Made by a program: the position numbers and the translations under genes
Notes under the pieces: model-generated
What the model was told of the DNA's origin: nothing
Seen by the model: the letters and a program-made list of their open reading frames with translations, nothing else
The model's database searches: none
Shown: in pieces, positions 5,157 to 43,700 of the stretch
Position numbering within the stretch: position 1 is the first letter of the stretch
Layout of the letters: each line of letters opens with the position of its first letter
NCBI GenBank assembly: GCA_016748015.1
Contig: JAAOMT010000543.1
Coordinates: 124,001-188,000 of the forward strand
From: Geosiphon pyriformis uo1
Lineage: Eukaryota > Fungi > Glomeromycota
Direction of reading: 5' to 3'
DNA: 64,000 bases

Positions 5157-5159
5157 TAA

Positions 5160-6222: not shown

Positions 6223-7197
6223 TGTTACCATATGAAATTAGAGATATTATTTAGCATAAAATTATCTTATAATTCCTATCATTAATTAACATATATTATC
6301 ATTTCAAATTATCACTTATTACATTAGCAAAAATGTCCGAAATTATCATTTAATTAATAACCCAAATTGTACACAACACAAATGTAACCTAATTACGATG
6401 ATCAATCATGCAATACCCCAAACTATGTAACATTCAAAAGTTTGCCAAAATTTATAGAAATTCGCCGAAATAATTAATAGTTCACCAAAATATCTAATAG
6501 TTCACAAAAATAACTTGTAGTTCATCAAAATGTATCTTTAGTTCAGCGAAATTGTAGAAAATAACAAAGTTCAAGTTCATAAAATAGTGTTATGACAAGT
6601 TGTATAAAAGAAAAGCTTCTCTCTTTGAGAAAATGTATCTTACTTTAGATTTATCACTTAGAACCATTCCTATACACACAAAAAGAAATAAATATCAAAT
6701 AATTTGAAAAACCAAGTTCTTTAATTATTGCACTTGGAAAATCCCCAAAACCCAACTAACATTTCGAAATTAATTAGCTACTAATTTCAGTAAACTGTTA
6801 GTGACTTCAGGCCTAGATAGAAAACGTTTCCCTTGACAGAATTCTATTTCTTTTACATTTCTTTTATTTTTCTTTTCTTTTCTTTTTTTTCAATCATTAG
6901 GATAGTCTACAGACAAGATTTCTGTAGAAGAGTTGACTTTCACAGCAAAGTAACTATACATTTTAGTGAGCTTCCAGACAAGCAATTCCTGGGAAAGAGT
7001 TGATGTTTACTACAACATAACTACATAAAGTAACTGGCACGGAATTGGCCATTCCACTTATAAGCCCAGCAGTTCAAATTATAGGAGATAATTTGAAGAT
7101 AAATTCAGTTATTGAAGGTTCAACCACATCCAGAAAATGTGAATTCACAGCAAACAAGCATCAACAACATTTAAGAAAAGAGACCAAAAATCTCTGG
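6223..7197 (+). repeat. 5' LTR of B1
   Basis: Starts TGTTACCA and is collinear with 14519-15478. Confidence 0.92.
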
Positions 7198-7304
7198 NNN
7201 NNNNNNNNNNNNNNNNNACCAGACACAACAACTCTAGAGTATTACCAATCAATTTACACCCACTGCAAGCAAAGATTCAACATTCAGATGTGTATAAGAG
7301 ACAG
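7198..7304. other. Assembly gap (20 N, 7198-7217) and Nextera/Tn5 mosaic-end adapter (7286-7304)
   Basis: Exact 19-mer AGATGTGTATAAGAGACAG. Gag sequence present in B2 is missing at this point in B1. Confidence 0.95.
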
Positions 7305-10300
7305 CTCTGAGACAGCAGCAAACAAAGAAAACAACTCTGAAATAACTGAAGAAGAATCAATAGACAGTGGAAACAAAGAAGATAAAATGACAACAGACAT
7401 TGCAAAAATCCCTGAATTCAATAGAGAAGATATTAAGACCAGTCCCCAAGAATGGCTCGACCAAGTTACTAAAGCTGGAGATGCAAATGGATGGAATGCT
7501 GCCAGAATGTTAAGAACAATTCTTTACTTTCTTAAAGGAACAGCAGAAGAATGGTTTAAAAACTTGGCTGTCCCATTCAATGATTGGAATGCTTTCAAAG
7601 CAGCCTTTCTTGAACAGTTTACTGACAATAATACCTCTATCACCCTTCGTAATTGTTTTCGAAATATCAAACAAAAACCCTCCGAATCTGTTATGACTTA
7701 TATTGGGAAATTTAACAAACTTCTTAGATGAATTCGCCAACTCGAAACAAATGATTATTATTCTGATGCTCAAATCTTGGATTAATTTATCACTGGTCTA
7801 AAAGATAAACTAATTAAAAAAATTCGCCCACATGTACCAGAAGATTTAAACTCTGCCATACAGCATGTGAAAAGATACGAAATGGTCATGAAAGAGGCCA
7901 ATCGCACAAAACTTGTAAATTTGGCAATTGGAGAAACCAGCTCAGCAGCTGAGAAAAAAATTGACCAACTCACAAAGAAGGTTGAAAACTATTTCACCAA
8001 TCAACAACAGCAACCCCAAAGATATCAACCACCCCAAAGACAAAATCAAAATAACTTTGCACCACTTTCCAATAACCAGCCTCAAAATTGCCATTACTGT
8101 GGAATCTCTGGCCACTGGAAAAGAGATTGCAGAAAGCTACAACAAGACCAACAAAATAGGAGTAATCAATATTACCCTCCACCATAGCAATCTTATTATC
8201 AACCGCCACCACTAGCTTACTATCTACCAAGACCCCAATACCAAAATAACTATTATCAGTCTGCCCCACAGCCAATCCAACAGCAATACCAACAACCACT
8301 TACACAACATTATTAAGTACCTGCTCGAAGACTGCTTACACAGAATCAATTCACACCACAAAACCGATACCAAGTAAACAACAATAGAATCAGTTCAAAT
8401 AACCAATTGGTTTCTCGAAATTCCACTCAACCAAGACCCAACCACTACCATACTCAACCCAGTTATTTAACAATGCCAAAAGAACAGAATTTTCATCATA
8501 CTGCACCATTGGAAGATAGAGCTGCAGCACAACAACAAAACCCTTCCTATACTCTTACCACAATCCCACCAGCCAGAATTGCTGAAAACGCTAATCTTTC
8601 AGATATATTCCCTTTTGAATTCGAAGTAAATGAGTCGCCGTTTCTGCTTAGCAATGCAGTTGCCAATAAACAAAAAGCAATCATGGCTATGTACACTGAA
8701 GCAGAAGTCGAAGAAAAAACAATTCACTTGATCCTAGACAGTGGATCTGCCAGAAGCATTATCACCTACCAGTTAATGCAACAGTTGAAAAGAAATGTCG
8801 ACCGACCAGCTCAAACAGTAATCGTCACTGCCAATGGCATGAAAAAGACCCCAGTAGGAAAAATTGACAATTTTTCATTCACTCTTGATGGAATCACCAT
8901 TCTAGTCAAAGTTTTTATAATGGACACACCTCAGTACCAAGCTCTCGTCGGAAATGATTGGCTTTAAAAAGCCAATGCTAATCTGAATTGGGAAACACAA
9001 GAATTAACAATCTCCTACCAAGGACAACACGCCCGAGTACCTGCCACTTGTAGTACATTCAACAAACACTTTGAAAAAGCCCCAGCTTTTGAATTCGAAC
9101 TGGAAGAGGAAAAATCCCTCATTGAAACATTCATGGCTCTTAGATCAACATCCAACTGGGCCGATGAAATAGAACAAGAACATTTTACCCTGCACTCTGA
9201 ACCCAAAACCTCTAGATGGAATATCTCTTACTCAAAGCCTGAACCAAAAAAACAATGCCTCTATATTCCCCTTAAATGTAAGGACTGCCACAAAAAACTA
9301 TCGTTAATGGGAGCCTGCATTTCACCTGAAGAAGAATATGAAAATCATACTTGTTATTACTGCAAGGCTTGTCACAAAGAACGATGGGGCCATCTAATAA
9401 AAAGGAGCGGAAAATGAGACAACACCCCTTGTTTGACTTGTGGAGATATGCTACTGGAAGAATGCAATTGGATTGATGTAGCCATGAGAGGAGGAGTTTG
9501 CGATCAGACCTGCCAATATGCTTTATCAATTTCAGAAAAAGTAAAAAGAGGAACACCCTTTAATGCAGCATACAACAGTGCTCTCAACAAACTTTATCAC
9601 TACCTCCATGATGCTGAGATAATTTTCGACCTAGCAATGACATTAATTAATGGAGCTACTAAAGAAGATGTTCACCAAATGAAGGAAGCAAAATACATTG
9701 AATACACCATGGAATTAGCTGGATTTAATTACGAAGATGAAGTAGAAGTCTACCACCAAATTGCAAGTCACACCTACCCAACTCAAGAAGCTCAAATTCA
9801 ATGATTAGAGTAAATAAATATTAGGTTATGTGAAGAATGCATTATGCCTTGCGATGAACAGTGGTGTCCAGAATGCTATGCTCTTAGTATCTCTTTGCCC
9901 AGCAAAAATAATGAGAATGAAATTGAATTTGGAGAACCTGAAGCAACAGAAGAAATTGAAACAACACCTATCTATCTTATCGAAAATCAGCCTGTCTTAT
10001 AACTTAAATACTTCAACAACAACGGACAAGGAATAAAATCTGAAAAAGCACACGAAATTGATGTTGGATATGACCTAAGATATCCAGGCAAAGATACTCT
10101 TGTTCTCAAACCCAAATCTCTCACAAAAATCAACCTCAAAATTGCACTTAAAATCCCACCAAGAGCAATGGTTCAAATTACCTCTCGGTCTTTTCTGGCA
10201 AGCAAAGAAATCAATGTTAGAGGAGGAATAATTGATGCTAAATATACTGGAGACATTACAGTGATGCTTCAAAATGAAACTGACAAACCATTCAAGATCG

Positions 10301-13300
10301 AACATGCTGAGAAAATTGCCCAAGCTATTTACCTACCCTTAATCAACATTTCGGGTTTGCAACTAATCAATCAAAGAGAACAATTAGGAAAAAGCAATAG
10401 AGGAACCCAAGGTTTTGGTTTAACTGGACAATTCACAGTTCCAATTAACATAGCTCTTAACACACGGAACAAATCCCACCAGATTTTCAGACTTCCACAA
10501 CCGATTACCATTTCACCCTTTGGAGAACATCCAAAAATCTACACCTGCCCAAAGCCAACAACCACACAACAAATTTTTGAGTCCAATAAACAAGTCTGCT
10601 TGGAACATAATATTTCGATCCCAAACATTTATATTCCAGAAAGAACAAAGAAAGTCTGAGTTACTTTTTACAACCCCAATAATTACCCCATAATTTTATT
10701 AAATAATTTAGAAATTGGAGTTATTCACAGTAATATATTTCAACAAGAATTACCCCAAACAGTCCCCAATTTCTCTGAAATTATTGGACATTCCATACCA
10801 AAAATCAACCCAAACCCCAGCTCCAAAAACTACTATGTTGTTATGGAAAAACTATCTCAAATCAACATGGGACAACTTGAACCACAACAACAGACCCAGC
10901 TCAAAGAGCTAATTGTAAAATTTGCCAATATCTTTGCTGAAAACAACAATGACTTAGGAAGAACCAATTTGGTCCAACACCAAATTTATACAGAAGATAC
11001 CAAACCAAGAAGACAACAAGCATATCAAATTGCTCCAGAAAGCCACCAATTCATCTAAGAAGAAGTACAACGAATTCTTAACAATGAGCTCATCCAACCC
11101 TCTATGAGTCCTTGGGCTTCACCTGTAGTGCTAGTTAAAAAAAAAATAGAAAGATCTGATTTTGTATTGACTATCGACAACTCAACAGTGTTACAATTAG
11201 AGATGCCTACTCCCTTTCCCGAATTGATGACATGTTAGATGCCCTTAGAAAATCCAAATACTTTTCAATACTAGATTTAGAAAGTGGTTACTGGCAAGTT
11301 GCTATGGATCCTAAAGATCACCCCAAAACAGCATTCACCACCCAAGGCGGAAATTACGAGTTCAATGTAATGCCTTTTGGATTATGCAATGCACCAGCAA
11401 TGTTTCAGAGATTAATAGATGTTGTGTACCAAGAATTTCTTTGAAAATCAGTAGTCGTTTATCTTGACAATACTGATGTTTATTCTCCATCATTCGAATT
11501 ACACCTAAAACACTTGCGAGAAGTTTTTCAACGATTACAAAAAGCAGGACTAAAACTCAATATCAAAAAATGCTACTTTGGAAAAACAAGCCTGGTCTTC
11601 CTTGGTTATATCATTAGTAAAGATGGAATTAAACCAGATCCTAAAAAATCAGCATTGTCAAAAACTTCAAAACTCCTTGAAACACTACAGAACTAAGAGG
11701 ATTCATAGGATTAGCATTCTATTATCAGAAGTTTATCAAAGGATTTTTGGAAATTGCAAAACCCCTCAACCAGCTCACCACCAAAAAACGTTGAATACAA
11801 ATGGACTACCGAACACCAAAAAGCTTTTGAAATTCTCAAAGAAAAACTGACAACAGCTCCAATTCTCGCCTACCCGGATTTCAGCAACCGATTTCGACTA
11901 GCTACAGATGCTTTTTATACTGCCTTTGGTGCTGTCTTATCACAACTAGATGACAACGGAAATAAGCAAGTAATTGCTTATGCTAGCAGAACATTAAAAC
12001 CAGCTGAGAAAAACTACCCTGCCACAGAACTAAAAACAGCAGTCGGTAATTTGGGCCCTACACCACTTCAACCTTTATCTCAGGCCTAAAAAATTCAATA
12101 TTATCACTGATAATATTGGACTCAAATGGCTTCAGAACAAAAATACTCAGCTGAATGCAAAACAAACCTGATGGACAGAATTTCTAGCAAACTATCGATA
12201 CATAGTACATCACAAACCAGGAAAACTCCACACCAATATTGACTGTCTCTCCAGAATGAAACAAGATTAGAAAAACACAAAAACCAACACTCAACTTAAC
12301 CAACCAAAAGAGCCAACAAACAATGAATTCGGAAAACTACAATAATCTCAAACAATATTTGGAAACATTAACAATCCCAACAGATTGGTCTCCAGATGAA
12401 AAACATCGACTACAACAACAAGCCAAACAATATTTTCTACACAACAACATTATTTATTACCAAAATTTCAAAAACCCAGACAAACCATTCAGATTAATAC
12501 AAGAACAGAAAAAAGAGACTATATTATACAACATGCATTCAAATCCTTCATCAGCCTACTTTGGAAAAGACAGCACCACCCAAAGAATACTAGAATACTA
12601 CTTTTGGCCTCGAATGAGAAAAGACATTTACAAATATATCGAATCTTGTGATAGTTGTCAAAAAAGAGGAGAAACTTGCTCTACAGAACCTTTAAACCCA
12701 ATCAAAGTTGAACAGCCTTTTGACAGAGTTGGTATCGATTTAGTCAGACCACTACATATCACAAACCAAGGAAACTACTACATTGTAGTAGCCGTAAACT
12801 ATTTTACCAAATGGCCTGAAGCCAGAGCCATTCAATGGGCAGATGCAAAATCAGTAGCAAATTTCATCTACAAAGACATTATTTGTAGACATGGATGCCC
12901 AATAGAACTTTTATTTGATCAAGAAACACATTTCGTGAACAATTTAATCCAGGAAATTTGTGGACGATTTAATGTCAAGAGATCATTATCTTCACCCTAC
13001 CATCCACAAACAAATGGACTGGTAGAACAGTTTAATAGAACATTGTATGAATCATTAGCCAAAGTTTCAACCAATTTTGAGCAAGAATGGGATCTCTTTA
13101 TTCCATCAGTGTTACTAGCATATAGGACACTAAAACAAGATACCACAAAACACACACCATTTGATTTAACTTATGGAAGAATAGCAACGTTACCAATTAG
13201 TTTCACAGTAGAAACATACCCAGTACAACCAATCAATGAAAACAATTTCCAAGAAACACTGCAACGAAGAGCCTACACTCTGCTTAGCACATTGGAAGGA

Positions 13301-13708
13301 AAACAACAAATAGCAGCCACCCATATTGAACACTTCCAAGCTTAACAAAAAAAATGGCATGATGACAAATTGCCTCCAGTCACCAATAAATTTAAAATTG
13401 GAAACAAAGTTCTCTTACACAGAACTAAAGCTGAAAAACAATGGAGTGGAAAATTTGAAAATAAATGGGATAGACCATTCTTTATCCATGAAGTTTTAGG
13501 CAATGGATCATACAAGCTAAGACTTGATGACAAAATTCTAGCAAAAGTTGCACATGGAGATCGTTTGAAACACTATAATTCCAGAAACAATTCTGAACTA
13601 TTAATTCCACAAATTGGTACACATTCCCCTTTAATCAATCCCGAAGACATTCCCCGAAATTTAAAACCAATAGTTGTTATTGAACAGCCTTACAACTTGA
13701 ACACTTAA
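7218..13708 (+). pseudogene. B1 gag-pol polyprotein (Gag-CCHC, aspartic protease, Cys-rich region, dUTPase, RT, RNase H, integrase), disrupted
   Basis: CHYCGISGHWKRDC knuckle; LILDSGS protease; RT FSILDLESGYWQV and VMPFGLCNAPA; RH LATDA and VIAYASR; integrase HHCC remnant, GIDL and SPYHPQTNG; C-terminal GPF/SH3-like domain. Many stops and frameshifts. Confidence 0.93.
10040..10430 (+). pseudogene. dUTPase domain within B1 pol
   Basis: Motifs (A/V)GYDL, SRSFLA, GIIDAKYTG, KIAQAI and RGTQGFG occur in the canonical order of trimeric dUTPases. Confidence 0.9.
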
Positions 13709-13829
13709 TTTAAATTTATTATTATAGTTATCTTCTTATAATTTAGAAACAATTTCACAAAAACAAAACAAAAATAACATAAAAACTCATACACCAAAAA
13801 TAATTTTCTTTTATCTCAAATTGTTTATA

Positions 13830-14510
13830 ATGACTATTTCTCAAAACATTCAACGATTATTCCAAAAACTAATATTAGCTTTAAAAACAATATCCGAACT
13901 ATTCATTACTGTTACTGGAAACCACATTAATTATACTCAAACAGAAGTAGTTACAAATTTAGCCCCAAATCCACGAAAATATCACCCGTATAAGAAGAAC
14001 ACAAGAAATTATACTGGAATTCACCTGCCAGAATTTTTAAAACTTGCTTTAAGAGAAAATCTAATGCTCACTCCAATTAGTATTCCACCAAATGCTACAA
14101 TTCAACAAAGATTTCAACTGTGTCTTAATGAGAAAAACACTGAATATTCTCCAATCTATAAATATTTTTCACATTGGAAAAACACTCTACAAATGGAAAC
14201 TGGAACTTACAACAGCAAACCTCGCAAAAGAAGCTATTCAGAAACAACTCCACAACGAATTCAAGACAACAGCTGGATCAACAAACAGTTGCTACAGGCT
14301 CAGAGCTGCTCTTAAACTTTATAACCTATTCCACACCTGTGAAAATGTACTATAAAACCCAATTTTTCAACCTTTGAAGATTCAATACATTGGAAAGCTC
14401 ACAGAACTGAAATTTCAACAATTTTCAGACCAAATTTCTTCAATAATTTTGGATTATTATCTGGAAATGACAAACAGTACTTGGATTTCGATAGAGCTCA
14501 GTCTTGAGAA
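13830..14510 (+). pseudogene. B1 ORF3 (env-position accessory ORF)
   Basis: ORFs 13821-14315 and 14092-14355 join by a frameshift into one reading frame of a little over 200 aa that runs to the PPT. Homologous to B2 5160-5833. Confidence 0.75.
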
Positions 14511-15478: not shown

Positions 15479-18400
15479 ACATTTTGGTGGAGCATCTCCT
15501 GTATGGATTTGATGTTGGACAATATCTGTTTTTCCCAAGTAATTGTTGTTTTTTGCAAATATATCTGCAAATTCAGCTATCAATTGTTTCAATTGTCTTT
15601 GTTGTTGAGGTTCTAAGGAACCCATGTTGATTCGAAAGAGTTTTTCTTCTAAAAAGTGGTAGTTTTCAGTAGTGAGAATGATATTTGAATTTGGGAGTAG
15701 AGTGTGTCTTACAATTTCAACGAAATTAGAGACAATTTGAGAGTTTTCATCTTGAAAAATATTGCTGTGTATGATTTCAATCTCTAGTTTGTTTAATAAG
15801 ACAATAGGGTAATTATTGGGATTGTAGAATGTAACTCGAAATTTTTTCATTCCTTTGGGAATATAAACATTTGGAATTGCGATTTCATGCTTCAAACAGA
15901 TTTGTTCATTGGATTCAAAAATTTGTTGTGTAGTGGTGGGTTTTGAGCAAGTGTAAATTTTGTGATGTTCTTCAAAAGGTGAAATGGTAATTGGCTAGAG
16001 AAGTTGTAAAATCTGGTAAGATTTATTTTGTGTATTAAGAGCTATGTTTACTGGAACTGTAAATTGTCCAGTTAAACCAAAACCTTGAATTCCTCTTTCA
16101 CTTTTTTCCAATTGTTCTCTGTTGTTTACTGATTGTAATCCCGAAATGTTAATTAAGGGTAAGTAAATTGCTTAAGCAATTTTTTCAGCAGATTCAATTT
16201 TGAATGGTTTGTTTGTCTTATTTTGTAACATGATAGTAATATCTTCAGTGTATCTTGCATCTATAACTCCTCCTCTAATATTGATTCTTTTGCTTGCCAA
16301 TGATAATCTGGAAGCAATTTAAACTATTGCTCCTGGTGAAATTTCAAGAGCAATTTTGAAATTGATTTTTGTTAAGGACTTTGGTTGGAGAACCAAAGTA
16401 TCTTTTTCTGAGTATCTTAGATTATATCCAGCATCAATTTCGTGTGCTTTTTCTGATCTGATTCTTTGGCCATGGTTGTCAAAATATTTAAGTTGTAGAG
16501 GTGGTTGCTTTTCAAGAAGATAGATGGGGGTGGTTGGTAATTCTTCTACTAGTTTAGATACTCCAAATTCGATTTCATTTTCATCATTCTCATCTGGCAG
16601 AGGAATGCTAAGAGCATAACATTCTAAACACCATTGGTCATCACAAGGCATAACATATTCTTCACACAATTGAATGTTTATTTGTTCTAATTGTTGAATT
16701 TGAGCTTCTTTGGTCAGATATGTGTGGCTTGCAATTTGGTGGTAGGTTTTTACTTCATCTTCATAATCAAATCCAGCTAATTCTATGGTATGCTCAATAT
16801 ATTTAGCTTCTTTCATTTGGCAGACATCTTCTTGGGTGGCTCTATTGATCAATGCTATTGCTAGGTCAAAAATTATTTTAGCATTATGAGGGTAGTGGTA
16901 AAGTTTATTGAGAGCACTGTTGTATACTGCATCAAATGGTATTCTTTTTCTGACTTTTTTCGAAATTAATAAAACATATTGACAGATCTGATCACATACT
17001 CTTTCTCTTATTGCTACATCAATCCAATTGCATTTTTCTGGTAGCATTTCTCCACAAATAAGACAAGAAGTTTTGTCCCATTTTTTACTTCTCTTTGGGG
17101 ATCCAAATTGTTCTCTATGGCATGCCTTGCAGAAGTAACAAGTGTGAGTTTCATATTCCTCTTCTGAGGAAATACAGACTCTCATAGATGAAAGCTTTTT
17201 TTTGCAATTTTTGTATTTTAGTGGAATGTATGGTGGTTCTTTTTGTGGTTCTGGTGTAGAATATCTAACTTTTTTCTATCCTCTTGATTTTTCAAAAATC
17301 TTTTGTTTTGTTTTCTCAGCCCAATTGAATGGTGATCCAAGAGCCATGTAGGTTTCAGTGAGTGGCATTTTTTTCTTTTCTTCAAATTCAAATACTAGAG
17401 CTTTTTCTAATCATTTGTTAAAAGTACCATAGGTTACAGGTACTATAGTATATTGTCTTTGGTATGAGATTTTAAGTTCTTGAGTTTCTCAGTTCAGGTT
17501 TGTATTGGCCTTGAGAAACCAATTATTTCCGACTAGAGCTTGGTATTGGGGTGTATCTATAACAAGAACTTTAACTGGAATGGTGATTTCATCAATTGTA
17601 AAGGGGAAATCATCAATTTCTCCTATTGAAGTCTTCTTCATACCATCAGCTGTGACAATAACTGTTTGAGCTGGTCTGTCTACGTTTTGTTTGAATTGTT
17701 GCATCAGCTGATAAGTGATAATACTTCCAGCTGATCCACTATCTAAGATTAAGCGAATGGGTTTTTCTTTTACTGTAGCTTCTGTGTACATAGCAGTAAT
17801 TGCTTTCTGTTCATTGACTACTGCATTACTAAGCAGAAATGGTGATTCATTTGCTTTAAATTCAAATGGAAATATATCTGACAGATTGGCATTTTGGGCA
17901 ATTTGAGCTGGTGAAATGGTGTGGTTGGAAGGATTTGATCTTGGTGCTGCAACTTTACCTTCAGAAAGTGTGGTTTGTTGAAAATCCGATTCCTCTGGTA
18001 TTGTAAGATAGCTGGGTTGAGTGTAATAGTAATTGGGTCTTTGCTGACCAGAATTTCAGGGAACCAACTGGTTATTTGGATTGATTCTGTTGTTGTTACT
18101 TTGCAATTGATTTTGGGGTATGAATTGGTTATGTTGAACCAATCTTCTTGTTGGTACTTGATATTGTTGAGTGGGTGGTGTCTGATATGGCTGAATTGGT
18201 AAAGATTGCTGATATTGTTGCTGCATTGGTTGTAAAGCTGGTGGATAGTAACTGTTTTGGTTTTGTGGTCTTGGTAAATAATAGGTTGGTGGTGGAAATT
18301 GGTAATAAGTTTGTTGTGGTGAAGAGTAACGTTGATTACTCCTGTTTTATTGGTCTCTTTGTAATTTTTTACAATTTTGTTTCCAGTGTCCTGGAATTCC

Positions 18401-19860
18401 ACAATAATAACAATTTTGAAGTTGGTTGTTGGATGGTGATCCAAAATTGTTTTGGTTGCATCATTGTGGTAGTTGATATCTTTGTGGTTGTTGTTGCTGT
18501 TGTTGTTGGTTTGTAAAGTAGCTTTCAACCTTTTTTGTGAGTTGGTTTATCTTCTTTTCAGCTGCTGAGCTGGTTTCTCCAATTGCAAGATTTACAAGCT
18601 TGGTGTAATTTGCTTCTTCTATTGCCATTTCATAGCTCTTTGCATGTCTAATAGCAGTTGCTAAGTCTGTTGAAGCATGTGAATGGACTTTTTTAATCAG
18701 TTTGTCTTTTAACCCTGCTATAAACTGATCCAGAATTTGAGCATCAGAATAGTAGTCATTGGTTTCCAATTGTCAGATTCATCTGAGAAGTTTGTTAAAT
18801 TTTTCAAGATAGATCATAACAGTTTCAGATGTTTCTTGTTTGATATTGTGAAAGCAGTTTTTGAGAGTGATAGAGGTATTGTTGTCGGTAAATTGTTGTA
18901 GAAAAACATCTTTGAATGCTTGTCAGTTTTCAAATGGTTCTTCTAAATTTTCAACCCATTCTCCTGCTGTTCTTTGAAGAAAGTAAAGAATTGCTTTGAG
19001 GATTCTTGCTGCAATCCAACTATTTGCATCTTCTGCTTTTTGAATTTTGTTAAGCCATTCTTGAGGACTGGTATCATTGTCTTCACCAGTGAATTCTGAA
19101 ATTTTTGCAATGTAAGCAATTGCCATTTCTTTTTCATTTTCTGTAATTTCTTTTGGTTTTGATTCAGTTTCTTCACTTTCCAAGCTTTCTGAATAATTAC
19201 TTTCGTTTTCCTGTAAGTAATCAATAATATTGGCACTTGTTAATATTGGTTTCTGCTGTTGAGTAGGGTTTCTAGATGACTGAAAATCTTCTGGTCTGGA
19301 GAAGTGGTTGAGTGGTGAATTTGGTGTTTGTGGTTGAACAAATGAAATTAGAAATAGTGTAATAGAAAGTGGTAATTTGACACTGGTTCCTTGTTCAGGT
19401 ATTTGCAAGTGTTTGGCAGTTGTCTTTTGTAGTGTTGGAGTGTTTAGAGTGGTTCTTGAGTATTGCTTCAATCTTTGTTTGCCTTTGTTGCTTGTTTCTG
19501 TCTCTGATTTAAAGTCAATAGAGTATTTAGACTGTACTGGGTATTTTTCTTCACAATACTCAATAATGTTAAAATTAAGTTCTTGGAAGTAGGTAGCAAG
19601 TGTTTCACTGTTCAGGTCTTCTGTTCCCAATTGTAAATAGTGCACTAAATTATTGTAAAGGTTGCTTCTGATTTCTAAAATGTTGTAGTTTTCAAAAAGA
19701 TAATTGTTGATGTGGTTTTCAATATATTGATATACTGATTTCTTGACAACTTCAATTCCGTCTGGAATGTTGAATCTTTGCTTGCAGTGGGTGTAAATTG
19801 ACTGGTAATACTCTAGAGTTGCTGTGTTTGGTGTGGTCGCCACTTTGAATTTGTTGTTGC
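15479..19860 (-). pseudogene. B2 gag-protease-Cys-rich-dUTPase portion of gag-pol
   Basis: ORFs 18923-19843, 18461-18769, 17489-17791 (LILDSGSAGS), 16319-17185 (ends HEIDAGYNL) and 15350-15895 are all homologous to B1. Confidence 0.92.
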
Positions 19861-19888
19861 TATGTTATTTCCATGAGAGAGCACCAAA

Positions 19889-28151: not shown

Positions 28152-28619
28152 TTAGTTATTAAATAAACTAATTAAATTCAAGATTAGAAACAAAGTATTT
28201 TTATATCATACCAAAGCAAAAAACAATAAAGTGAAAAGTTTAATCCCAAATGGAATAGTTCATTTTACATTAAAAAATTTTTGGGAAATGAAACATACAA
28301 GTTAAAATAAAACAACAAAATCTTAACCAAAGCAGCACATAGTGATTAATTAAAACCATATTACAATATAATATTATTATCAATCAGTAATATTTTACAA
28401 CTGGAAGTACAACAAATACTACTCCAACCAGATAAGATTCTACAATATCTGGAACTAATCATAATTATTAACACAAACATATTTAATTAATCTATTAAAA
28501 CAGTATATAAAAACATGATATATGCAACAAAAACAACAATAAAAAAATGAAAATCTCAGACCACATCTACATAATGACTTAACAATTATTCCAGATCATA
28601 AATCAACAACAATTAAATA

Positions 28620-28913
28620 TAAGGCAAATTGCAACAAAATTAGACAAAGTGAATATTTATTAATAAAAAGCTATTTATAATGTAACTGTAAAATTGATCA
28701 ATATAACTGATAACATTTTGAAAAGTAATAACAGTACTCATTCATAACTTATGGACCTGTTAATTTCAATGCTTACTTTATCATACCAGAATGTGATGAA
28801 TATAAACTATAACATGATTAATATAGAATTATCTCTATATATAAAAATATAAATATGAAATTAATTTACATTAAATCTACCATGGAACCCAAGAATTACA
28901 GCACTATTCGAAC
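28620..28913 (+). repeat. Left terminal inverted repeat
   Basis: Aligns along its length to the reverse complement of the right TIR. Differences are mostly transitions, plus one indel of about 14 nt. Confidence 0.9.
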
Positions 28914-29115
28914 TAAACGTCATTAATGCGTATCAACATGCGTGAATTTCTGCGCATTGATTATCATTGGTCACATTTTGCATCCAGGGAACAATCGTTA
29001 CATTGTGAAAGTTCCCAATAATACGTCATGGATTAAGACACTGATCAGCATTATATCACACTGCGCAGCACGTCTTTCCAACGAAAAAGTTTCGTCCTTC
29101 ACATCATAAAGAAAC

Positions 29116-31098
29116 ATGAGCACACCATACGATGACGCGAAGAAGGAGTATGATGGAGCTAAGGGGAAGTTGGAAAGGTTAGGAAATCTGAGGATAAGTT
29201 TGGCGGCTGAAGAATGGGGAAGCGAGAGAGAGAGGAAGAGGTGGATAGCGGAGAAGGAACAGCTGGAGCGGGAAGAAGAAGAGTTGAAAACGAATGTAGA
29301 ATACTGGAAAGGAGAAATGAAGAGGCTGACGACCTCTCAGCCAGGTAACGACTTTGTGACTCGGGCGTTGGGGACATAGCGTAATGTGTACATGGTTGTA
29401 GTTGGGGACATAGAACTGAAATTCATTGATGCTATTGTCTGCTCCTAGCCATCAGTTCAAAGCGGACACTTGATGATTTAGAACGCGAGTATGGTACTAG
29501 GATTGCAATACTTGAAGCAGAGCACAGGAAAATCAAATACACCATCACAGCAGCACGTGAAATTGGTGAATATGTCATAAGCGAAGCACAAGTAGATACA
29601 CAATACATTTTAAATCTACTGTCAACCTCAGGCAACGTGTCATTTGAAAAGCTGAAATTGCCAGTCAATTTTCATAAGCTGCCATGCACAAGTGAAAGTG
29701 ATCTCCAGGTGAAATTTGTGAAGTTGTTTCAATCATTGCCAGAACAGATGAAACCATGGGGAATTCGAGACACATCAGTTGAAGGCTATCTCAAGGATCC
29801 AATCGGAAAGATTGATTTTACGATAATTCAAGGGAACATGGTTTTATGGGTGCATGTTGTTTCTCTAATTGAAATTAAGTCTACTTTGAATAGCAAAACC
29901 AGTCACTGTGAGGCACTCGGGCAGCTCATAGACAGATTTACAACTATTTTTGACTTACAAAAAAATCGATCATTTATTATTGGAGCTATTTGTGGAGATT
30001 CACAAGTTGAATTTGTGTGGCAGAATCGAGAGAAGAACATCAAGCGATCAGACTTATTAGATCTGAGTTTTACCAGTCAAACAATAGGGATGAATATGCT
30101 TCTAAACATGGTGACTGCATCACAAATGCAGCTGGGGTATTCTCCACCTGAAGATTATAAGGCAGCAGTTAGCTCTGTTAGTCATTTCAGTCCTGAGTCT
30201 GTCCTTCGACCAGCAGTCAATGAACGGGGATCTTTTGTCCTTAGTGGATTTATGAATAACAATCATGTTATCCTCAAGGTTTGTGATGTTGATCATGAGA
30301 TAAAAATACTTCACCATCTTTGTGAATGTGATTTCATTCCCAAGGTTATCACATATGGAAACCTTCCAGAGAACAAAAAGTAGGTGTTGACTTTGTGCTG
30401 AGATTTTTATTGATATTAATTGTATATTAATATTTAATATTTAATGATGTAGATACATGGTAATGACACCTTTTGGAGAACATCTTGATGTTGTTAAGCA
30501 TGGCTGGCATGGAATTCTCAAAGCTTTTCAAGATGTTGCTGAAGCTATGAAGTTTGCAAATAACCATGGCATCCTACATCGTGACATTTCATATGGAAAT
30601 ATTGTATTCTATGAACAACATGGCTATCTCATAGACTGGGGTGTTGCAGTAGTAGGATCACCAGAAGTGGAAAATGCCTTAACTGGTACCATCCTGTTTT
30701 CCTCTGTAAAGGTTTGTCCCGTGATTCTTCAAATTGCATTATGTACATATTACTTGCAAACATATACCCTTTTCATTTTTCAGGTTACAACAAAATTGCA
30801 TGAGAACAAAAAGTTCACTCACACATTTGATGATGACATCGAATCTCTCTTTTATACATTTTTATATGTAGCATGTGATGGTGTGCTCAAGTGGAAGAAA
30901 GGTCTAGGAGGCATGGATTTTGTTGCAGCAATGAAGTTTTACACAGTATATGGAAACTTCAGTAAACAACTGAAGTATGTAAAGAATAATGAACTGCTCC
31001 CTTACTTGCATGGATTTCGTGACATCATTGTTTCCAATTGGACAGATAAGATGGCAATAGACATTGATGCAGTTATTAGGGTGTTTGACATTAAGTAG
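29116..31098 (+). CDS. Crinkler-like protein: coiled-coil header + PD-(D/E)xK nuclease-like domain + fungal-type (FunK1) protein kinase; 4 exons, 577 aa
   Basis: Exons 29116-29344, 29449-30379, 30453-30711 and 30784-31098, with GT-AG introns of 104, 73 and 72 nt, splice into one open frame. Nuclease-like KIDFTII...LIEIK. Kinase motifs VILKV, HRDISYGN, LIDWG, TGTILF and DDIESLFY. Confidence 0.85.
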
Positions 31099-31678
31099 CT
31101 ATTCAGCATGATACATGAGAGGAAGAGAACACTTTTTTAATTCTTTATCATGTGAATCGTGATTTTTTGCTTCTTCAGATGCAATGGTATAAACTTGCTG
31201 CCAAGTCCCATGATTAAAATTAGCATGTCTTAAATTTGAATGAATAAAGTGAGAAATGCAATTGCTCAAGAAATTAACTGTATAAATTGTCATCTCGAAC
31301 GAGGACACTCATGATTTACGCGTACGTAGTAAAGACAACAATAAAATACGGTCCTACCTCAATTGTACCACACCTCGAATATATCCCCGAAAAAGCTCCG
31401 TCCCTAAGTGGGGATATAAACGCGGTAGGACTGTACGTACGTAATAATAAAAGTGAAATTTTGCTTTCTCAGTAATTTCGAAATTAAACCATGTGATTAT
31501 ATTGATAACATATTAATATTGAGTGCGTATACGTATAAGTACACCCTCACATAGTTGCCAATTTCTTTTCGTTTTTGAAAATAGCTTATCACAAATAGTA
31601 ACAATAACAGACGAAAGAAATTCAGTAAAATAAACAAAACCATTGATGCATAAAATTAATATATAGGATTACCAGTAT

Positions 31679-33427
31679 ATGGAAAATTATAATTATAATG
31701 GTTTGACTGAATATGAAAAAGCAGTGCATTTCTTTGAGATAGGTTGCAAATGTGGTTGCTCAAAAATGATTCCGAGAGAAAGGTTTGCCGAATTACGTGG
31801 AGCGTTTCAAGCTCTCTCTAGACCCGAACAAGATATATTTTTAATGGCCCAGCTGAATGCCATGAATGGTGGAGAAATAACGGCTAGTCGACGTCTTAAA
31901 AATAAAACGCGTACCAATAAGCGAACGTTTTACTACTGAGATCGCAATACGCCACTTTGTCAGAAAACGTATCTCAATATGTTGGGAATTGGTCGCACTC
32001 GCTTCGAAAACGTCAGAAATCACCTAGCGACGAAGGTATCATACCGCGCGTTCATGGTAACATAAAACGAATGCCGCGATGGAAAACCAAAATAACCATT
32101 GATATAAACGTTGCTACTGCCGTAAAGAATTTTCTCGAAAACTATGCGGAAATTCATGGACTACCAAGTCCTGGTAGAAATGTCAATCGCATTACTCAAT
32201 CACTGACACTATTGCCAGCTGAAACGAGTTATAAATCAGTCTATCGTGATTTTATTGCTGGTCTCGAAAATGATAGCACGTTGCAGTTGTTAAAATATGA
32301 TGCGTTCCGCAAGTTATGGCACTAATTAACACCTTCTATTCAAATTATGAGTCCAAGAACGGATTTATGTGACACATGCCAACATTTTCGAAATGGATTA
32401 CAGTACAATGCTCGCAAGGAGGAAGAAGCAAGAGACTTATTAAAGAAATTCAAAGAACATCTAGTTAAAGCTAAATTAGAGAGAAATTATTACCATAAAA
32501 ATACGAAATTAGCAGAACAACAGAGAAAATTAGTAAATGAGCATTTTATAACAAGAGGTAAAGCCTATTGTAGCATTGACGCGACTGCTCATTATAGTTA
32601 CGATTGAGCACAAAACGTTCACGCCCCCCATTCCCGATCAACAAGTAAGTAAAATTTATTATCTTAGTCCGCGTAAAGTGCATTTATTTGGTATTCAAGA
32701 TGAAGCAGTTCGCGAACAAATTAATTACGTTCTCGATGAAGATGAAATAATTGGCAAAGGTCCTAATGGTACGCTGAGCATGGTATTCGATGGAATTAAG
32801 AGACTGAATAAAGGCGAAAAACATCTAAAGATTACTTGTGATAATGCGGGTGGTCAGAATAAAAATAATGCCACCATTTGATTTTACCTATATTTAGTAA
32901 TTTGCAGTTATTACGTAAGTATCGAATTAAATTTCATGGTACCTGGACATACCAAATTTAAGTGTGATGGTAGTTTTGGATTGATTAAAAAGCTTTATCG
33001 AAAAACAACAGTAGATTGTGTGGATCACATTGTTGAAGTTGTGAAAAAATCAAGTACAGCGGGATTAAACAAAGTTCAGTGCTATGAAAACGGCAAAGGC
33101 TTTCAATACTTAGATCTTAATTCCGTGTTGGGAATTTTTTTTAAGAAATTGAGTGGTTTACAAAAGTATCAGCATTTTCTATTTGAAGCAGCTCAACCTG
33201 GAGTTGTCAAAGCCCAGCTGGTTGCTAATGGTACTTATACTGAATTTAATTTGTTAAAAACTAAAAAAGCAAGTGTTTCTGAAATTACCAAAGAAATTAA
33301 GTCCTTTTCAATCCTAGTACTAACCCCTCCTCCTTTGGATTACAGAAGGCAAGAATACCTTTATCACAATATTCGTCCATTTGTCCGGGATGAATTCAAA
33401 GATATCACTTGTCCAGAACCAATCTAA
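31679..33427 (+). pseudogene. Sola2-like DDD transposase, intronless; two frameshifts, one TAA, three in-frame TGA
   Basis: CKCGC and LCQKTY N-terminal motifs; RVHGN; GLPSPGR; TDLCDTC; HYSYD*AQ; KGPN; CDNAGGQNKN; VPGHTKFKCDGSFGLIKK. Frameshifts at ~32035 and ~32630, TAA at 32323. Confidence 0.8.
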
Positions 33428-33477
33428 TCTACACTGCCAATAAATAAACATATTTATATTACCGAAGCTGTAGAAAT

Positions 33478-34463
33478 ATGAATAATCAAAACGAAATTGA
33501 TTCCCTTTACACTTTTATCAAAGAACAAGTCAAACTCAAAGGGAAAAAATTAAAAATCATTGCTGATTGAGATGAATGTTTACAATCTAGTAAGCCGTTT
33601 TTATTGTGAGAAGCTGGGAAGAAGAACCTATCTTTTTCAGAATATTTCAAGAAATTTTGAAAAAATTCCCAAATTGTTTATTCTACTACCTGTGGTTCTA
33701 GACTAAATAAAAAGGCATGAGAATATTCTTATGTTGACAAAGATGATCCAAATGAGAAAAAGAATATTGAAATGTTAGCTAATGGAACTTTAAAAAGAAG
33801 AATAAAAGCCAATCTAGAACCTCACTATAGTAATCTTCCCAAATTCTATGACTGAACCTTTTATCTTTCATTAGCCCAAGAATTATTGCAGGCTTTAAAA
33901 GAAGAACTAATTAGTGAATTAGTGATTGTCAGTGCTATGGTCAAAGGTCGGAAAAATGCTGAAAAAGGAAAGAAAGACAAATTCATTAAAAATTTTGCTA
34001 ATTTTTCTCAAAGCAGATTGGTTTTAATAAAAAGAGTAATTCCCAAAAAAAGTGAAGAAGAAAAAGGGGATGGCTATAAACCTACTCACTGAGATTACAT
34101 CAAAGAAAATATTCCTGATTTTGATATTTTTATTGATAATTCTCTAATCATTATTGAAGAAACTAATAAGTTATTACCTGATAAAACTTATGTTATACCA
34201 AATTACAAATGCAACCAAAATCTCAAAGCCTCCAACATCTATCATGTAACAATTAATACCACTGATTTAAAAGAAGGTGATTTTGTTATTGCTGCTTTAG
34301 AAATAAAAAATAACCAGTTAAAGAAAAAACTAAAATTTCTGCAAATACAGAGAGAAACAGTTGAGTTTTTTTGATGATAATTAATGGATTACTAATTTTT
34401 ATCTTAGTTGCTTTAATAGTTAAAATTACAATAGTGCAGAAAAAACATTTTAGAAAAAATTAA
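33478..34463 (+). pseudogene. Genetic-code-4 (TGA=Trp) HAD-superfamily-like ORF with probable C-terminal membrane anchor; likely of Mollicutes-related endobacterial origin
   Basis: ATG at 33478 followed by 300 codons with no TAA/TAG until 34378-34380. In-frame TGA at 33568, 33607, 33658, 33718, 33853 and 34090, and no TGG. Motifs IIAD(W)DECL, VIVSA and DFDIFIDN. A 1-nt shift near 34320 would extend it through (W)VFLMIINGLLIFILVALIV to TAA at 34461-34463. Confidence 0.8.
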
Positions 34464-34628
34464 AAAATTATTGACAAAACAATGACAAAGATCATATCAA
34501 GCTATTATTTTTCGTTCTTGGTAAATTCATAAGTAATTTGTCTTTGTCTAAATATTCTTAAAGAGTTTAAGTATTATTAATTTTAAAACATAGAGAGCAA
34601 TTTTTTTTTTCTTGTTCTTTTTTAAAAT

Positions 34629-34932
34629 GTTTCTAATGGTGCTATAATTCTTGGATTTTATAGTAAATTTAATGTAAATTAGTTTCATATATTTTATTTT
34701 TATATAGAGATAATCCTATATTAATTCTGTTATGATTTATATTTATCACATTTTGATATAATAAAGTGAATATTAAAATTAACAAGTTTATAAGTTATGA
34801 ATAAGCACTATTATTATTTTTCAAAATGTCATTAATTATACTGGTCAATTTACAGTCATATTATAATCAGCTTTTTATTTATGTTATATAATAAAATGTT
34901 CACTTTGTCTGGTTTTGTTGCAGCATGTCCTA
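34629..34932 (-). repeat. Right terminal inverted repeat
   Basis: Reverse complement of 28620-28913. Ends ...GCAGCATGTCCTA. Confidence 0.9.
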
Positions 34933-36329
34933 TACGAAAATTATTATCAATTATCAAACAATTTGTTATCAAAACACCAAAAAAATAGCCAAAGTCACCA
35001 CATATTAGCAACTACAGAACCAAACAAAGTACTGGTCAAATAAAATTATAGAAAAAGTAAAAAACAATTTTGAAAAAATATTGGTAATTGTTTTAACAGA
35101 AAAGTTAACTAAAAAAAACTAAAAACAATAAATAAAACAACTTTTTATACTATACTGTTATTAACAATTGGAACAAAAGCTGAATATTAAAGAATTATAT
35201 ATTAATAAATCCAAAAGAATATTCAATTGAGAAATAATACAACAGATTAAAAATTTTATTAGAAAAAAAATGAATTCTGTATTATATATTAAAACAATTT
35301 ATTGATTACATATCATATTTTAAAATTATTTAGAAATACTACTATACTTAAAAATAGAAACAATAACTATTGACCAATAGAAAAAAACAAACAATTTATA
35401 ATTTAAAGACATAAAAATCAGAATTAAACAAACAGTATTAGAGAAAAAAATAAGAGACTTAATTCAAAATGAAAATTTTAACAAAACTTAATATTAAAAA
35501 AGGAGATAATATTACTTATAGAAAAAAATACAAAAAAAAAAGTAAAAAAAACATATAAAAAAATAGATTAATAAGAAAATAGTATTTAATAAATAAGCAT
35601 AATATCAAAAAACTATGACACATTACTTAGTAATATACACATTGTTAGAAAATTAAAACACATTGCTCAGTAATGTACATATTGTTAAAAATTTAAAGCA
35701 TATTGCTTAGCAATAAGCATATTGTCAAAAAAATAATAGCACATTACTCAAAAATATATAAGATCTTATATAATGAAAATTATGTATATATAGCAAAAAT
35801 GTTAAAAACAGAAAAGAAACAATTCAGTTTAGACTAATTAGATAACAATATTTTTCTTTTTAAAAGATAGTTTTCTATAACTTAAAGTGAAATTATACCA
35901 ATATTAATAAACTTATCTATTATTATCCAATTTATGTTATTATTTATTGATTAAAAAAATATTAATCAATTTTATATTATTAATACTTTATGTTAATAAA
36001 AGCCAATAATTAACCATACTGGACTAATAGCTCTTAATTATGGCTATTAATAAGATACTAATTTCTTATTTTTTTTCTTGATTTTTTTTTATTTTTTTTT
36101 ATTTTTTTTGTTATTACTAATTTATAAAAAAAAATTAAAGTGCTGAGTGTTTGACATTAAATATAATTTGGTAAAAAACCTGTAAAACAAGAATAAAATA
36201 CTCATAAAATTAAAGATAGCTTATCAGAAAGACAAAACTATCAGAAGAAACTGGCCACTATACTAAAAAAAAATTTATGAAAAAAATTTTTAGAATGAAT
36301 ACTGAAATATTTATTGAATCTTTGTTTAT

Positions 36330-40710: not shown

Positions 40711-43700
40711 CCCAAAATGTCAAAAAAAGTAGAACAATGAACCATATCTCACTTGCAGCAAACAGTTGCTTGATAAAGGAATGTGGAATAATATTCCTGG
40801 GCAAAGAGAAACGTGTGATACTTCATGCCAATACATGATCCTCATCAGTGATTGAATGAGTTGTGGAATGTCTATTACTGCAGCCTGGCACCAAGCAATC
40901 AATCACTTGAATGGTATTTACATAACAAGAACAAAATCTGGCATATGGTCAATGCCAAAATCAAAGAAGCCATGCTTAGTGAAATTTTAGAGATCAAAAA
41001 CAACCCACCAGAACCAGTCGACATTGTTTTGATTTCCAATCTAGAAGCATTTTTAGATATTAAAACAGGTTCAAAAGAATTTCATGGACATTATCAAAAC
41101 TTAGCACCCACTAGGGAAGAGCAAAAGCAACACTTAAAACAGTTGAACATTAGATTGTATCAACACTGCTTAATTTCTTATGACTTTCAATATTGTAATA
41201 AGTGTGACTTTATTTACAATCCACCAATCTGCAAGATCTACATGATTTCAGAGGAAAAAAAACCAATCAGTCACTGTGCATCAAAATCGGAATCAAATTT
41301 TAATCCCAATTCAAACTCCGACAACAATAATAATGAAAACAATGATTTTAGTTTTATTTTATATAGTAATAACAATGACAATGATTTAGACTCAGATTCA
41401 AAATCCAATTTAAACTACAAACAATATATTGCACTCCTCAATCTCACCAAAAAACAAGAACTAAAATGGTTCAGTGATAATAATGAAGGTATTATGCCAG
41501 AACATATATATAATACTGATGCAGGATTTGATCTGAAATATCTAGAAAAAAATTTCATCAAATTAGAACTCCATTCGTACATCTGCATTAATCTCAAAAT
41601 AGCACTGGAAATTCTAACAACAATAATGGTTCAGTTAGTATCTAGGAGCAGCTTAGCCAAAAAGAGAATCAACATTAGAAGAAGAATAATTGATGCAGGA
41701 TACATAAGAAATATCATTGCTATGCTACAAAATGACTTAGAAAAAGCATATATTATAGATCCAAATAAAAAGATAGCACAAGCAATATTTTTGCTTTTGG
41801 TTAAGATAGCTTAATTAGTATTAGTAGAAAACAGAGAAGAATTAGGAATCACAGCTAAAAGGATACAGAAATTCAGATCAATGGGTAGAATAGATGTACC
41901 AGTTAATATGGCAGAAAAAAAAATTGTTGACAAGAGAAAAATTATCTCCATCTGTCAATTAATCTCCATTTTACTATATAACCAGTACATAGTAGTCATA
42001 AAAAAAAAGTGAAGGATCAGGTTCAAATTTTTGAGACAGAAGCAACACTTTGTGAATTAGGAGAAATTGGATTAATCAATTTACACATACCAGCCAAGAA
42101 TCATAATTACATAAAAATTCTTATCTACAACAATACAGGAAATGTTATCAGGATACCAGAAGGAACAACCATTGGATACTTAACCACTAAAATTGAAAAC
42201 CAACTGTCTAACATCATTCCAGACTTTTCACAACTTTGCAGATATGTGGATATTATATCACAAACAATATATGGACAAAATAAATGTTATTTGCTCCAAT
42301 CAAAACAATTAAAACAAATAAACATGGGAAATTTAGATCCACTACAACATATACAGCTCAAAATGTTACTTAACAATTTCAATAACATCTTTGTCAGCAA
42401 AAATGAATTTGGCAGAACTGACATCATCCAACATAAAATCAAGACTGAGGATGCAATACCAATTAAACAGAGAGCATACAGAGTACCACTAGCTAGCCAT
42501 GAGATCATTTGTCAAGAAATCAATCAGATGCTTAACAATAGATTAATTCAATCATTAATAAGTCTATGGTTATTACCAATAGTGCTAGCCTATAAGAAAA
42601 ATGGAAAAATCCGCTTTTATGTAGATTACTGAAAACTGAATGGAGTAACAAAAGAAGATAGTTATCTGACTCCAAAAATACAAGAACTGTTTGACAATTT
42701 TGGTGAAAAGAAATGGTTCTCGACACTAGACTTAGACAGTGGTTACTGGCAAGTAGCCATAAAACCAGAAAATAAAGAGAAGACAGCATTTACCATGTAA
42801 GAAAAGAATTTTGAATTTGAAGTTATGTCATTCAGCTTAATGAATGCTCCTGCCACATTTCAACAACTCATGGAAATTGTCTATATCAGACTACTATGGA
42901 AATTAGTAATCGTATATTTGGATGCCACCAATATATTCTTAAAAACATTTGATGATTATTTACATCATCTTCACCAAGTATTTGAAAGACTCAAATGAGC
43001 AGAATTAAAACTAAATGTTAACAAATGCTTCTTTGGCAAAACAGAGCTCAAGTTTTTGGAACATGTTATAAGCAAAAATGGTATCAAAACAGATCTGGAT
43101 AAGATCACAATAGTAAAGAACTTTTCAGTACCAACCAATTTGACAGAACTAAGAGCATTTTTGGGATTTGCAGACTATTATTACTGTTTTATCAAGGACT
43201 TTTCTAAACTGGCTCAGCCACTCCATCACTTACAAACTAAGAATGTAAAGTATTAATAGACAGAAACTTAACAAGAAGCATTCAACACATTAAGAAGAAA
43301 GCTTATTTAAGCTTTAGTGTTAATGTATCCAGATTACAGCAAACCATTTATCATCACCACTGATACATCAAGTCAGATATTGAAAGCAGTACTATCACAA
43401 AAAGAACCAAATGGAAGAGAACATCCAGTAGCTTACACCAATAGAAACTTAAGTTCAGCAAAAAAAAACTATAATACTCCAGCATTAGAACACTTAGCTA
43501 TCTATTGGGTTGTTATCAAATGGAAAGAATACTTGAGTCAAAAGTTTGATGTGTACATTGATTACAAAGAATTAACTTCAATCCAAAAGTAAAAATTTGG
43601 AGACAATCGCCATGTCAGATGGAAGATAAAACTTTCACTATTTAATTATACAGTACATTACAAAAAAGGAAAAAAAAACAGAAATGCTGATAGATTGTCA

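Follow-up and report, generated by a model that had tools for sequence, protein, structure and literature searches.

Transfer of DNA from organelles and endosymbionts to the nucleus is well known, both as nuclear inserts of mitochondrial and plastid DNA (NUMTs and NUPTs) and as Wolbachia inserts in arthropods and nematodes. Gene-carrying transposons with terminal inverted repeats (TIRs) are equally familiar from Pack-MULE-like transduplication and from bacterial composite transposons. Between the Glomeromycotina and the Mollicutes-related endobacteria (MRE) living in them, transfers from host to bacterium have been reported (MGMT, PknD/LRR kinases), as have MRE contigs contaminating fungal assemblies (PMC10507103, PMC11423566). 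Here we describe a locus of Geosiphon pyriformis uo1 at which a gene written in a bacterial code lies within a transposon in nuclear DNA. The window, i.e., the whole stretch analysed, comprises 64,000 nucleotides (positions 124,001 to 188,000 of contig JAAOMT010000543.1, assembly GCA_016748015.1). It contains ORF2, a long frame that stays open only when TGA is read as tryptophan (genetic code 4), and a TIR transposon belonging to the DUF7869 family carries ORF2 as its 3′ passenger.

ORF2 is a real gene with a family in MRE and a HAD fold, located in nuclear DNA on a multicopy TIR element. We consider it to be a decayed nuclear copy of an MRE-native family (Candidatus Moeniiplasma type), carried on a DUF7869 TIR transposon whose source lineages are kept in endobacteria, and estimate the probability of this reading at about 0.8. 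The frame itself is as follows:

33478–34371, plus strand: ORF2, an open frame of 298 codons in code 4, belonging to a HAD-superfamily family specific to MRE, probably a membrane-anchored nucleotide phosphatase (judged from the frame, the homologs and the fold).

ORF2 starts with the ATG at 33478 and is directly followed by TGA-TGA-TAA at 34372–34380. Its 298 codons include six in-frame TGAs (33568, 33607, 33658, 33718, 33853 and 34090) and lack TAA, TAG and TGG altogether; out of frame, TGG occurs six times. None of 20,000 mononucleotide shuffles of the stretch, which has a G+C content of 28%, was free of in-frame TAA and TAG. Among the 29 long TAA/TAG-free frames of the window, this one alone has 8 TGA and 0 TGG. 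Under the standard code a single 68-amino-acid ORF is listed at this place and nothing longer. The sequence-only reading of this DNA had proposed a hidden code-4 gene of about 300 codons of which the ORF track shows just a 68-aa piece, and both statements hold.

Five of the six TGAs are located at Trp positions conserved in homologs, which use TGG or TGA there (contexts DW-DE, LLW-E, FW-E/K, W-EYSY and W-DYI). The sixth, at 33853, corresponds to Arg (CGA) in sister copies, so the expectation that homologs would have Trp at the TGA positions is borne out at five sites and fails at this one. TGG is found at the first Trp of the diverged copies L019 and L028 and at the last Trp of L006/L017, indicating that TGA and TGG alternate as synonymous codons. 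The TGA/TGG ratio of 6/0 is in line with the other purine-ending pairs of ORF2, e.g., AAA/AAG (35/9) and GAA/GAG (22/2). The ratio of nonsynonymous to synonymous substitution rates (dN/dS) is 0.27–0.76 across pairs of ORF2 copies, with a value of 0.35 for two copies that share all the Trp-site TGAs, in keeping with purifying selection while these TGAs were present. The Trp-site TGAs of ORF2 are a codon-level feature rather than a mutational one.

The ORF2 profile was built from stop-free pieces, and a search with it gave 232 clusters, many of them 285–340 aa long with the N-terminal DW-DE motif, a C-terminal anchor and a basic tail. All members looked up are metagenomic, apart from a Geosiphon model. 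Three contigs bearing the family (L065–L067) are gene-dense, have 32–35% G+C, and their genes all contain far more TGA than TGG and end in TAA or TAG. Phage integrase, ParA, PemK, DDE_3 and AIG1/LRR genes accompany the family on bacterial contigs, and the bacterial homologs have TGA at the same Trp sites as the window ORF2.

Only one match was obtained among species-representative bacterial genomes, the chromosome of DhMRE, the endosymbiont of Dentiscutata heterogama. This chromosome (NZ_LN828718.1) holds at least three copies of the family, and DhMRE carries a tRNA with the anticodon UCA. The other 200 genomes that were sampled from the order of DhMRE gave no match, and among five genomes of its bacterial family only DhMRE has the gene. 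The ORF2 family is so far confined to MRE and MRE-derived elements. In the unrooted family tree, in which the surroundings are known for part of the members, transposon-linked ORF2s occupy at least three separate places, i.e., they are polyphyletic within the MRE family, suggesting repeated capture. The bacterial code of the nuclear copies and these tree placements may point to capture by the element from the bacterium. An MRE donor had been proposed at the outset, with the corollary that translation in code 4 would find the best relatives in Mollicutes-related endobacteria and not among mitochondrial or standard-code fungal genes. The searches agree with this: the best homologs are code-4 bacterial genes, the DhMRE copies and the dense TGA=Trp contigs included.

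The fold was modelled, on the basis of alignment A2, for the bacterial homolog P0007 and not for the broken window copy. The AlphaFold2 (AF2) model has a mean pLDDT (predicted local distance difference test score) of 85, and its top Foldseek matches are almost all HAD-superfamily enzymes. The best structural match is AphA, a class B acid phosphatase (VIA Z 11.5, root-mean-square deviation 3.5 Å, 181/208 residues in the second-look alignment); deoxyribonucleotidase-like proteins and the human 5′(3′)-deoxyribonucleotidases follow with Z of about 9–10, and the phosphatase domain of T4 Pnkp with about 8.8. In alignment A2, D26, D28, K152, D201 and D202 are invariant and S139 nearly so, which corresponds to HAD motifs I (DxD), II (S/T), III (K) and IV (DD). 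Family members are also found fused to HIT, uridine kinase/PRK or LRR domains (P0002, P0042, P0055, P0017), and P0001 is a tandem duplication of the ORF2 domain.

The earlier guess of a HAD-fold phosphatase or nucleotidase is thus supported by the HAD core of the model and by its nearest structures, which are nucleotide phosphatases. Like AphA and the 5′(3′)-deoxyribonucleotidases (DDDD group of HAD; cdN/mdN at Z of about 9), the family has a Rossmann-like HAD core with DxD, Ser, Lys and DD motifs. It is set apart from them by a long insert separating motif I from motif II and by a membrane anchor at the C-terminus, no sequence model matches it, and it is known so far from MRE and derived elements. 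Most likely, the ORF2 protein of the bacterium would be a membrane-anchored nucleotide phosphatase involved in nucleotide scavenging.

The transposon carrying ORF2 is 6.3 kb long (window 28618–34934) and consists of the following parts in addition to ORF2:

28618–28912, no strand assigned: left TIR of about 295 bp, an inverted repeat pairing with 34631–34934.

29385–31098, plus strand: 5′ cargo, a gene resembling fungal protein kinases of the FunK1 type and divided into two open pieces (PF17667, 5.9e-06 and 2.7e-13).

31661–31681, plus strand: inner inverted-repeat motif of 21 nt, overlapping the transposase start, with its partner inside the right TIR.

31679–33427, plus strand: DUF7869 (DDE-type) transposase, matching PF25273, with TGA at conserved Trp codons.

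34464–34934, minus strand: right end, made up of the right TIR (34631–34934) and what is left of a small ORF starting within it, recognised by the inverted repeats and by homologs in L090, L105 and DhMRE.

Just outside both ends of the element stands TATA, a palindrome in AT-rich DNA and a candidate 4-bp target duplication. Of the 5′ half, the left TIR alone recurs in the genome, in at least 30 copies with 76–92% identity, and pairs of left and right TIRs are found 5.4–6.9 kb apart on several contigs. The kinase cargo has no other genomic match at the DNA level and is unique to the window copy. For the 21-nt inner motif a single pairing with 1 mismatch was found where 0 are expected by chance. 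The same pair of motifs brackets the transposase together with the 3′ genes in soil contigs L109 and L110. In L109 a 403-nt hairpin with arms 94% complementary and 326 nt apart is located just past the right end of the soil element (5105–6236); a similar structure is present at L115:6346–7382.

ORF2 starts 50 bp after the transposase stop. It has at least 18 copies in the genome with 34–88% amino-acid identity, all the examined ones adjoining a transposase, and the protein model KAG9283966.1 covers another copy of the element in G. pyriformis. The small ORF at the right end has a homolog at DhMRE 6632–6811 (55% over 60 aa), just upstream of a PemK/MazF-like toxin frame. As this ORF includes part of the TIR, the end of the transposon seems to be built from endobacterial DNA. 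In a nucleotide search of the whole element against DhMRE just the conserved ORF2 motif was matched.

Elements of the soil contigs have a constant layout and changing cargo. Their 3′ cargo consists of varied TGA-rich genes (3–12 TGA, 0–3 TGG), and a second 3′ gene family has a DhMRE homolog too. The kinase cargo of the window copy is written in the standard code, with 7 TGG, 0 in-frame TGA and a preference for AAG.

The window copy of ORF2 is damaged at three places:

33853–33855, plus strand: copy-specific change of CGA (Arg) to TGA; sister copies have CGA or CGT, and contigs of the runs have C at 33853.

34141–34143, plus strand: change of the second Asp of motif IV to Asn (GAT to AAT); sister copies have GATGA, the window GATAA.

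34345–34463, plus strand: deletion of 1 nt near 34348, after which the C-terminal transmembrane anchor and basic tail are displaced into frame +2, ending in TAA at 34461–34463.

The C at 33853 was seen in one contig each of runs X1 and X22. The TGA found here in the window is a stop in the nuclear code and an Arg-to-Trp replacement in code 4. HAD motifs I–III are kept; motif IV reads DN, while the DD pair is invariant in the family. In frame +2, ORF2 is followed by a hydrophobic segment and then a basic tail, and an extra A behind 34348, present in sister copies, in four contigs of X1 and in one of X22, joins this tail to ORF2. The full-length homologs likewise have such an anchor at their end. 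The frameshifted hydrophobic anchor with a basic tail had been suspected from the window alone, and the extra A of the sister copies, which restores continuity, confirms it. The three lesions imply that ORF2 has no function at this locus; the copy is dead in either code. Its description as a fossil that the nucleus cannot translate is supported, host tubulin exons using TGG, and the damage extends to code 4 as well. The window transposase has at least two frameshifts, its pieces lying in different frames, so this copy is also dead.

Intact transposase ORFs in other copies have 559–612 codons in code 4 and share five conserved Trp columns. Over 83 ORFs from Geosiphon and soil contigs these columns contain TGA and TGG in the proportions 29/14, 19/28, 23/29, 66/7 and 41/39. 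All 34 full-length transposase ORFs have in-frame TGA (2–6 each, none being TGA-free). The alignment of 20 copies shows that this is specific to the frame: TGA stands against TGG as 26 to 7 at two in-frame Trp sites, while fourteen out-of-frame TGG sites have 201 TGG and 7 TGA, and an out-of-frame TGGGA is intact in 16 of 16 copies. ORF2 has the same frame-specific pattern of TGAs. The transposase dN/dS is 0.04–0.17, with synonymous divergence (dS) ranging from 0.2 to saturation; for two copies within Geosiphon dS is 1.06 and dN/dS is 0.08. ORF2 and the transposase have both evolved with TGA as a sense codon. As the transposase is readable only in code 4 yet strongly conserved, its lineages appear to be maintained where TGA means Trp. 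The closest pair of copies within Geosiphon is about 94% identical, and given the low dN/dS the Geosiphon copies look like repeated arrivals from evolving source lineages rather than a copying burst in the nucleus.

Relatives of the transposase are present in bacteria. Two metagenome-assembled genomes of Ca. Moeniiplasma glomeromycotorum have them between restriction-modification genes, and another is located on a 39-kb contig among genes for ribosomal protein, PNPase, ThiI and tRNA synthetase. The Trp codons of these MRE-chromosomal transposases are nearly all TGA. In two of them (L194:9234–10990 and L197:9100–10747) the N- and C-terminal halves are in different frames, with the switch falling in both genes at one and the same A-rich run between these halves, which could be a programmed frameshift of the insertion sequence kind or a homopolymer error. 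The transposases of the nuclear type come from Geosiphon, Ambispora, Diversispora and soil contigs, and their neighbours include HLH, Mob1, LSM, Crinkler and intron-split malate synthase genes. In another fungus, represented in JGI sample 3300063414, Crinkler-domain genes are located immediately upstream and LRR-fragment genes immediately downstream of nuclear-type transposases (L196:8995–9345, L199:8140–8601).

Relatives are also represented, as assembled contigs, in metagenomes of rhizosphere and soil as well as in a single metatranscriptome. Twelve further rhizosphere/soil metagenome studies (runs X2–X20) hold 6–28% of the exact 31-mers of window 31679–33445, and the depth in runs X2, X21 and X22 falls almost wholly on the transposase part and hardly at all on ORF2, so near-identical transposase sequence is widespread outside Geosiphon. 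No A-to-G change at a TGA site is listed in the run contigs, which, being assembled, cannot show transcription, strand or editing.

The Geosiphon assembly comprises 128.3 Mb in 792 contigs, and the contig of the window extends beyond 500 kb (tRNA match C673:510761). This match comes from a tRNA family search of the assembly in which 63 out of some 7500 candidates received a score. The intergenic DNA has 14–20% G+C, and the window also holds a long terminal repeat (LTR) retroelement and a FunK1 kinase. Host tubulin exons are open, use TGG and have 0 in-frame TGA, so the host encodes Trp by TGG. The scan for bacterial 16S gave weak matches only (393–536 bits over 1533 model positions), which are taken as eukaryotic or organellar small-subunit (SSU) rRNA; with no true bacterial 16S present, the endobacterial genome is not in the assembly. 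Neither the Rfam nor the tRNA scan detected anything in the window, and a search of the Geosiphon assembly with the MRE tRNA(UCA), a weak test, gave no match.

In the proposed sequence of events, endobacteria would maintain the source lineages of the nuclear copies, with TGA read as Trp there. The MRE source genes would be expressed in code 4, the ORF2 product being a putative membrane-anchored HAD phosphatase of about 300 aa. The nuclear copies would be insertions that decay after arrival and are presumably inert in a standard-code nucleus.

Several results weigh against this reading. The tree separates MRE-chromosomal transposases from the nuclear type with a split support of 100/100; the former make up their own clade (54–59% identity), so the proposed reservoir of the nuclear-type element in bacteria has not come to light. 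Wherever the neighbourhood of a nuclear-type copy could be read, it is fungal nuclear DNA and in no case a bacterial contig. DUF7869 was found neither in DhMRE nor in 200 other genomes of its order. The 5′ cargo of the soil elements consists of large ORFs with 0 TGA versus 5–11 TGG, or of kinase-like genes (Pfam gave one kinase match only on the large 5′ ORFs), and such TGG-only cargo is not predicted by long residence in a code-4 genome. As to the passenger, Pfam recognised neither the ORF2 pieces, nor the longer stop-free pieces of other copies, nor the full-length homologs, and the profile search of PDB sequences with the family reached an E-value of only 0.19. The family is thus new at the sequence level within the HAD fold, and its function is read from fold, motifs and fusions only.

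The missing bacterial copy of the nuclear-type element and the standard-code 5′ genes leave room for decoding of UGA in the nucleus or for a two-way shuttle. In the former case the transposon would be purely nuclear, with UGA decoded as Trp in the fungal cytosol (by near-cognate read-through of high efficiency, a suppressor tRNA or recoding at particular stages) and with 3′ genes captured from endobacterial DNA. The location of the nuclear-type copies, the strong purifying selection on the transposase, the strictly standard-code 5′ cargo of the same elements and the relatives in Ambispora and Diversispora annotations would fit such a transposon. Ordinary read-through, however, would yield essentially no product from genes with up to 12 TGAs. 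Read-through is favoured by a C after the stop, and the TGAs of the window and sister copies are followed by G, A or T and in no case by C. At every Trp column TGA and TGG replace each other freely, as synonymous codons do, the tubulin genes have no in-frame TGA, neither a tRNA in the window nor a genomic match to the MRE tRNA(UCA) was found (the latter being a weak test), and both ORF2 and the transposase have relatives in true code-4 bacteria. We regard nuclear decoding as rather unlikely. It is conceivable, and we put it forward only tentatively, that the DUF7869 family shuttles between bacterial and nuclear DNA, with 3′ genes for code 4 and 5′ genes for the fungal cytosol. If so, the element would move repeatedly, collect genes on both sides and physically carry the long-noted exchange of genes between Glomeromycotina and endobacteria; it would also be the first mobile element with genes for two codes.

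Hypermutation of a standard-code gene of a fungal transposon, by deamination or by a process resembling repeat-induced point mutation (RIP), could have turned TGG into TGA and made code 4 an artefact. Degraded copies (L021, L022, L024, L026) are indeed full of G-to-A and C-to-T changes, and the CGA-to-TGA and GAT-to-AAT changes of the window are of this type. Such a process does not account for TGG-to-TGA changes confined to the frame (26 versus 7 in it, 7 versus 201 out of it) with the out-of-frame TGGGA untouched, for lightly changed copies without TGG-to-TAG or CAA-to-TAA changes, for a dN/dS well below 1 with the TGAs in place or for TGAs at the same Trp sites of bacterial homologs, and we consider it very improbable. 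An AT-rich sequence and the reading of TGA as Trp, which fungal mitochondria share, would suit a NUMT-like insert from a mitochondrion or mitochondrial plasmid; the homologs, however, are found on the DhMRE chromosome and, on bacterial contigs, in the company of ribosomal, restriction-modification, ParA, PemK and integrase genes. Moreover, the listed genomic matches are tens of kb to more than 2 Mb into contigs, beside a transposase. The small contigs C202 and C402, which have clustered tRNAs or a bacterial-type SSU match, contain none of them. This is in agreement with the initial view of an endobacterial source, and we see next to no likelihood in such an origin. Endobacterial reads might also have been joined into a fungal contig, as MRE contigs inside Glomeromycotina assemblies have been published (PMC10507103, PMC11423566) and repeat copies of this assembly contain N gaps. 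A chimera of this kind is hard to reconcile with ORF2 lying 50 bp past the transposase stop in an element whose TIRs recur at least 30 times, with at least 18 ORF2 copies on contigs beside fungal repeats, with the same architecture in independent metagenome contigs (26–119 kb) that contain intron-split or typically eukaryotic genes, or with the lack of a true bacterial 16S in the assembly; it is highly improbable. The reading that we prefer remains that of a decayed nuclear copy of an MRE-native gene.

Some other features of the window and the assembly were noted. The small contig C202 (239–10491) has clustered tRNA genes repeated about 9.8 kb apart; it probably represents either a tandem artefact or the genome of the mitochondrion. 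The degraded LTR retroelement occupies window 7021–14315 on the plus strand and includes gag, aspartyl protease, dUTPase and integrase, broken by TAA/TAG and TGA; a second dUTPase-bearing frame is located at 40852–41814. On the minus strand, at 16319–19864, a frame of about 1180 codons with 7 in-frame TGAs is made up of three TAA/TAG-free frames in direct succession (319, 357 and 506 codons). Pfam gave no match for the two pieces tested; the locus is a candidate for a further element whose ORFs contain TGA.

The difference between the two codes serves as an inherent marker, showing that bacterial-code genes entered fungal chromosomes many times. These genes travel on a discrete transposon whose enzyme was kept functional for very long under TGA = Trp, and the route and direction of DNA movement between the partners become testable. 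We predict that the element will be found in endobacterial genomes, that the transposase acts on the 295-bp ends and that the nuclear copies are untranslated. For annotation, it follows that standard-code gene callers break or mis-splice such loci in Glomeromycotina assemblies. A HAD-type family specific to these unculturable bacteria is also newly defined.

Our literature search found no transposon with code-4 genes in fungal nuclei; the MRE genome papers of 2015 in PNAS and the paper on the Geosiphon genome lay outside its scope. Compared with the described transfer from fungi to MRE (PMC10507103), the partners are the same, Glomeromycotina and MRE, and the kinase and LRR kinds of genes surround these elements too; the published direction, however, is from host to bacterium and the vehicle is unnamed. 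As in RIP of fungi, old copies gain G-to-A and C-to-T changes and stops; unlike in RIP, the Trp-site TGAs are frame-specific and common to bacterial homologs. The layout resembles Pack-MULE-like transduplication and bacterial composite transposons in that TIRs enclose a transposase and unrelated cargo differing between close copies. Here, in contrast to the known gene-carrying TIR transposons, the cargo comes from two genomes with two codes, fungal-type and standard on the 5′ side, bacterial and code-4 on the 3′ side. With NUMTs, NUPTs and Wolbachia inserts the locus shares the presence of intracellular bacterial DNA in host chromosomes, where it is unexpressible as it stands and decays. It differs from them in that the bacterial gene is no random fragment and sits in many copies inside a discrete transposon of the eukaryotic TIR type, that the code difference both marks its origin and blocks its translation, and that the mobilising transposase is itself written in the bacterial code.

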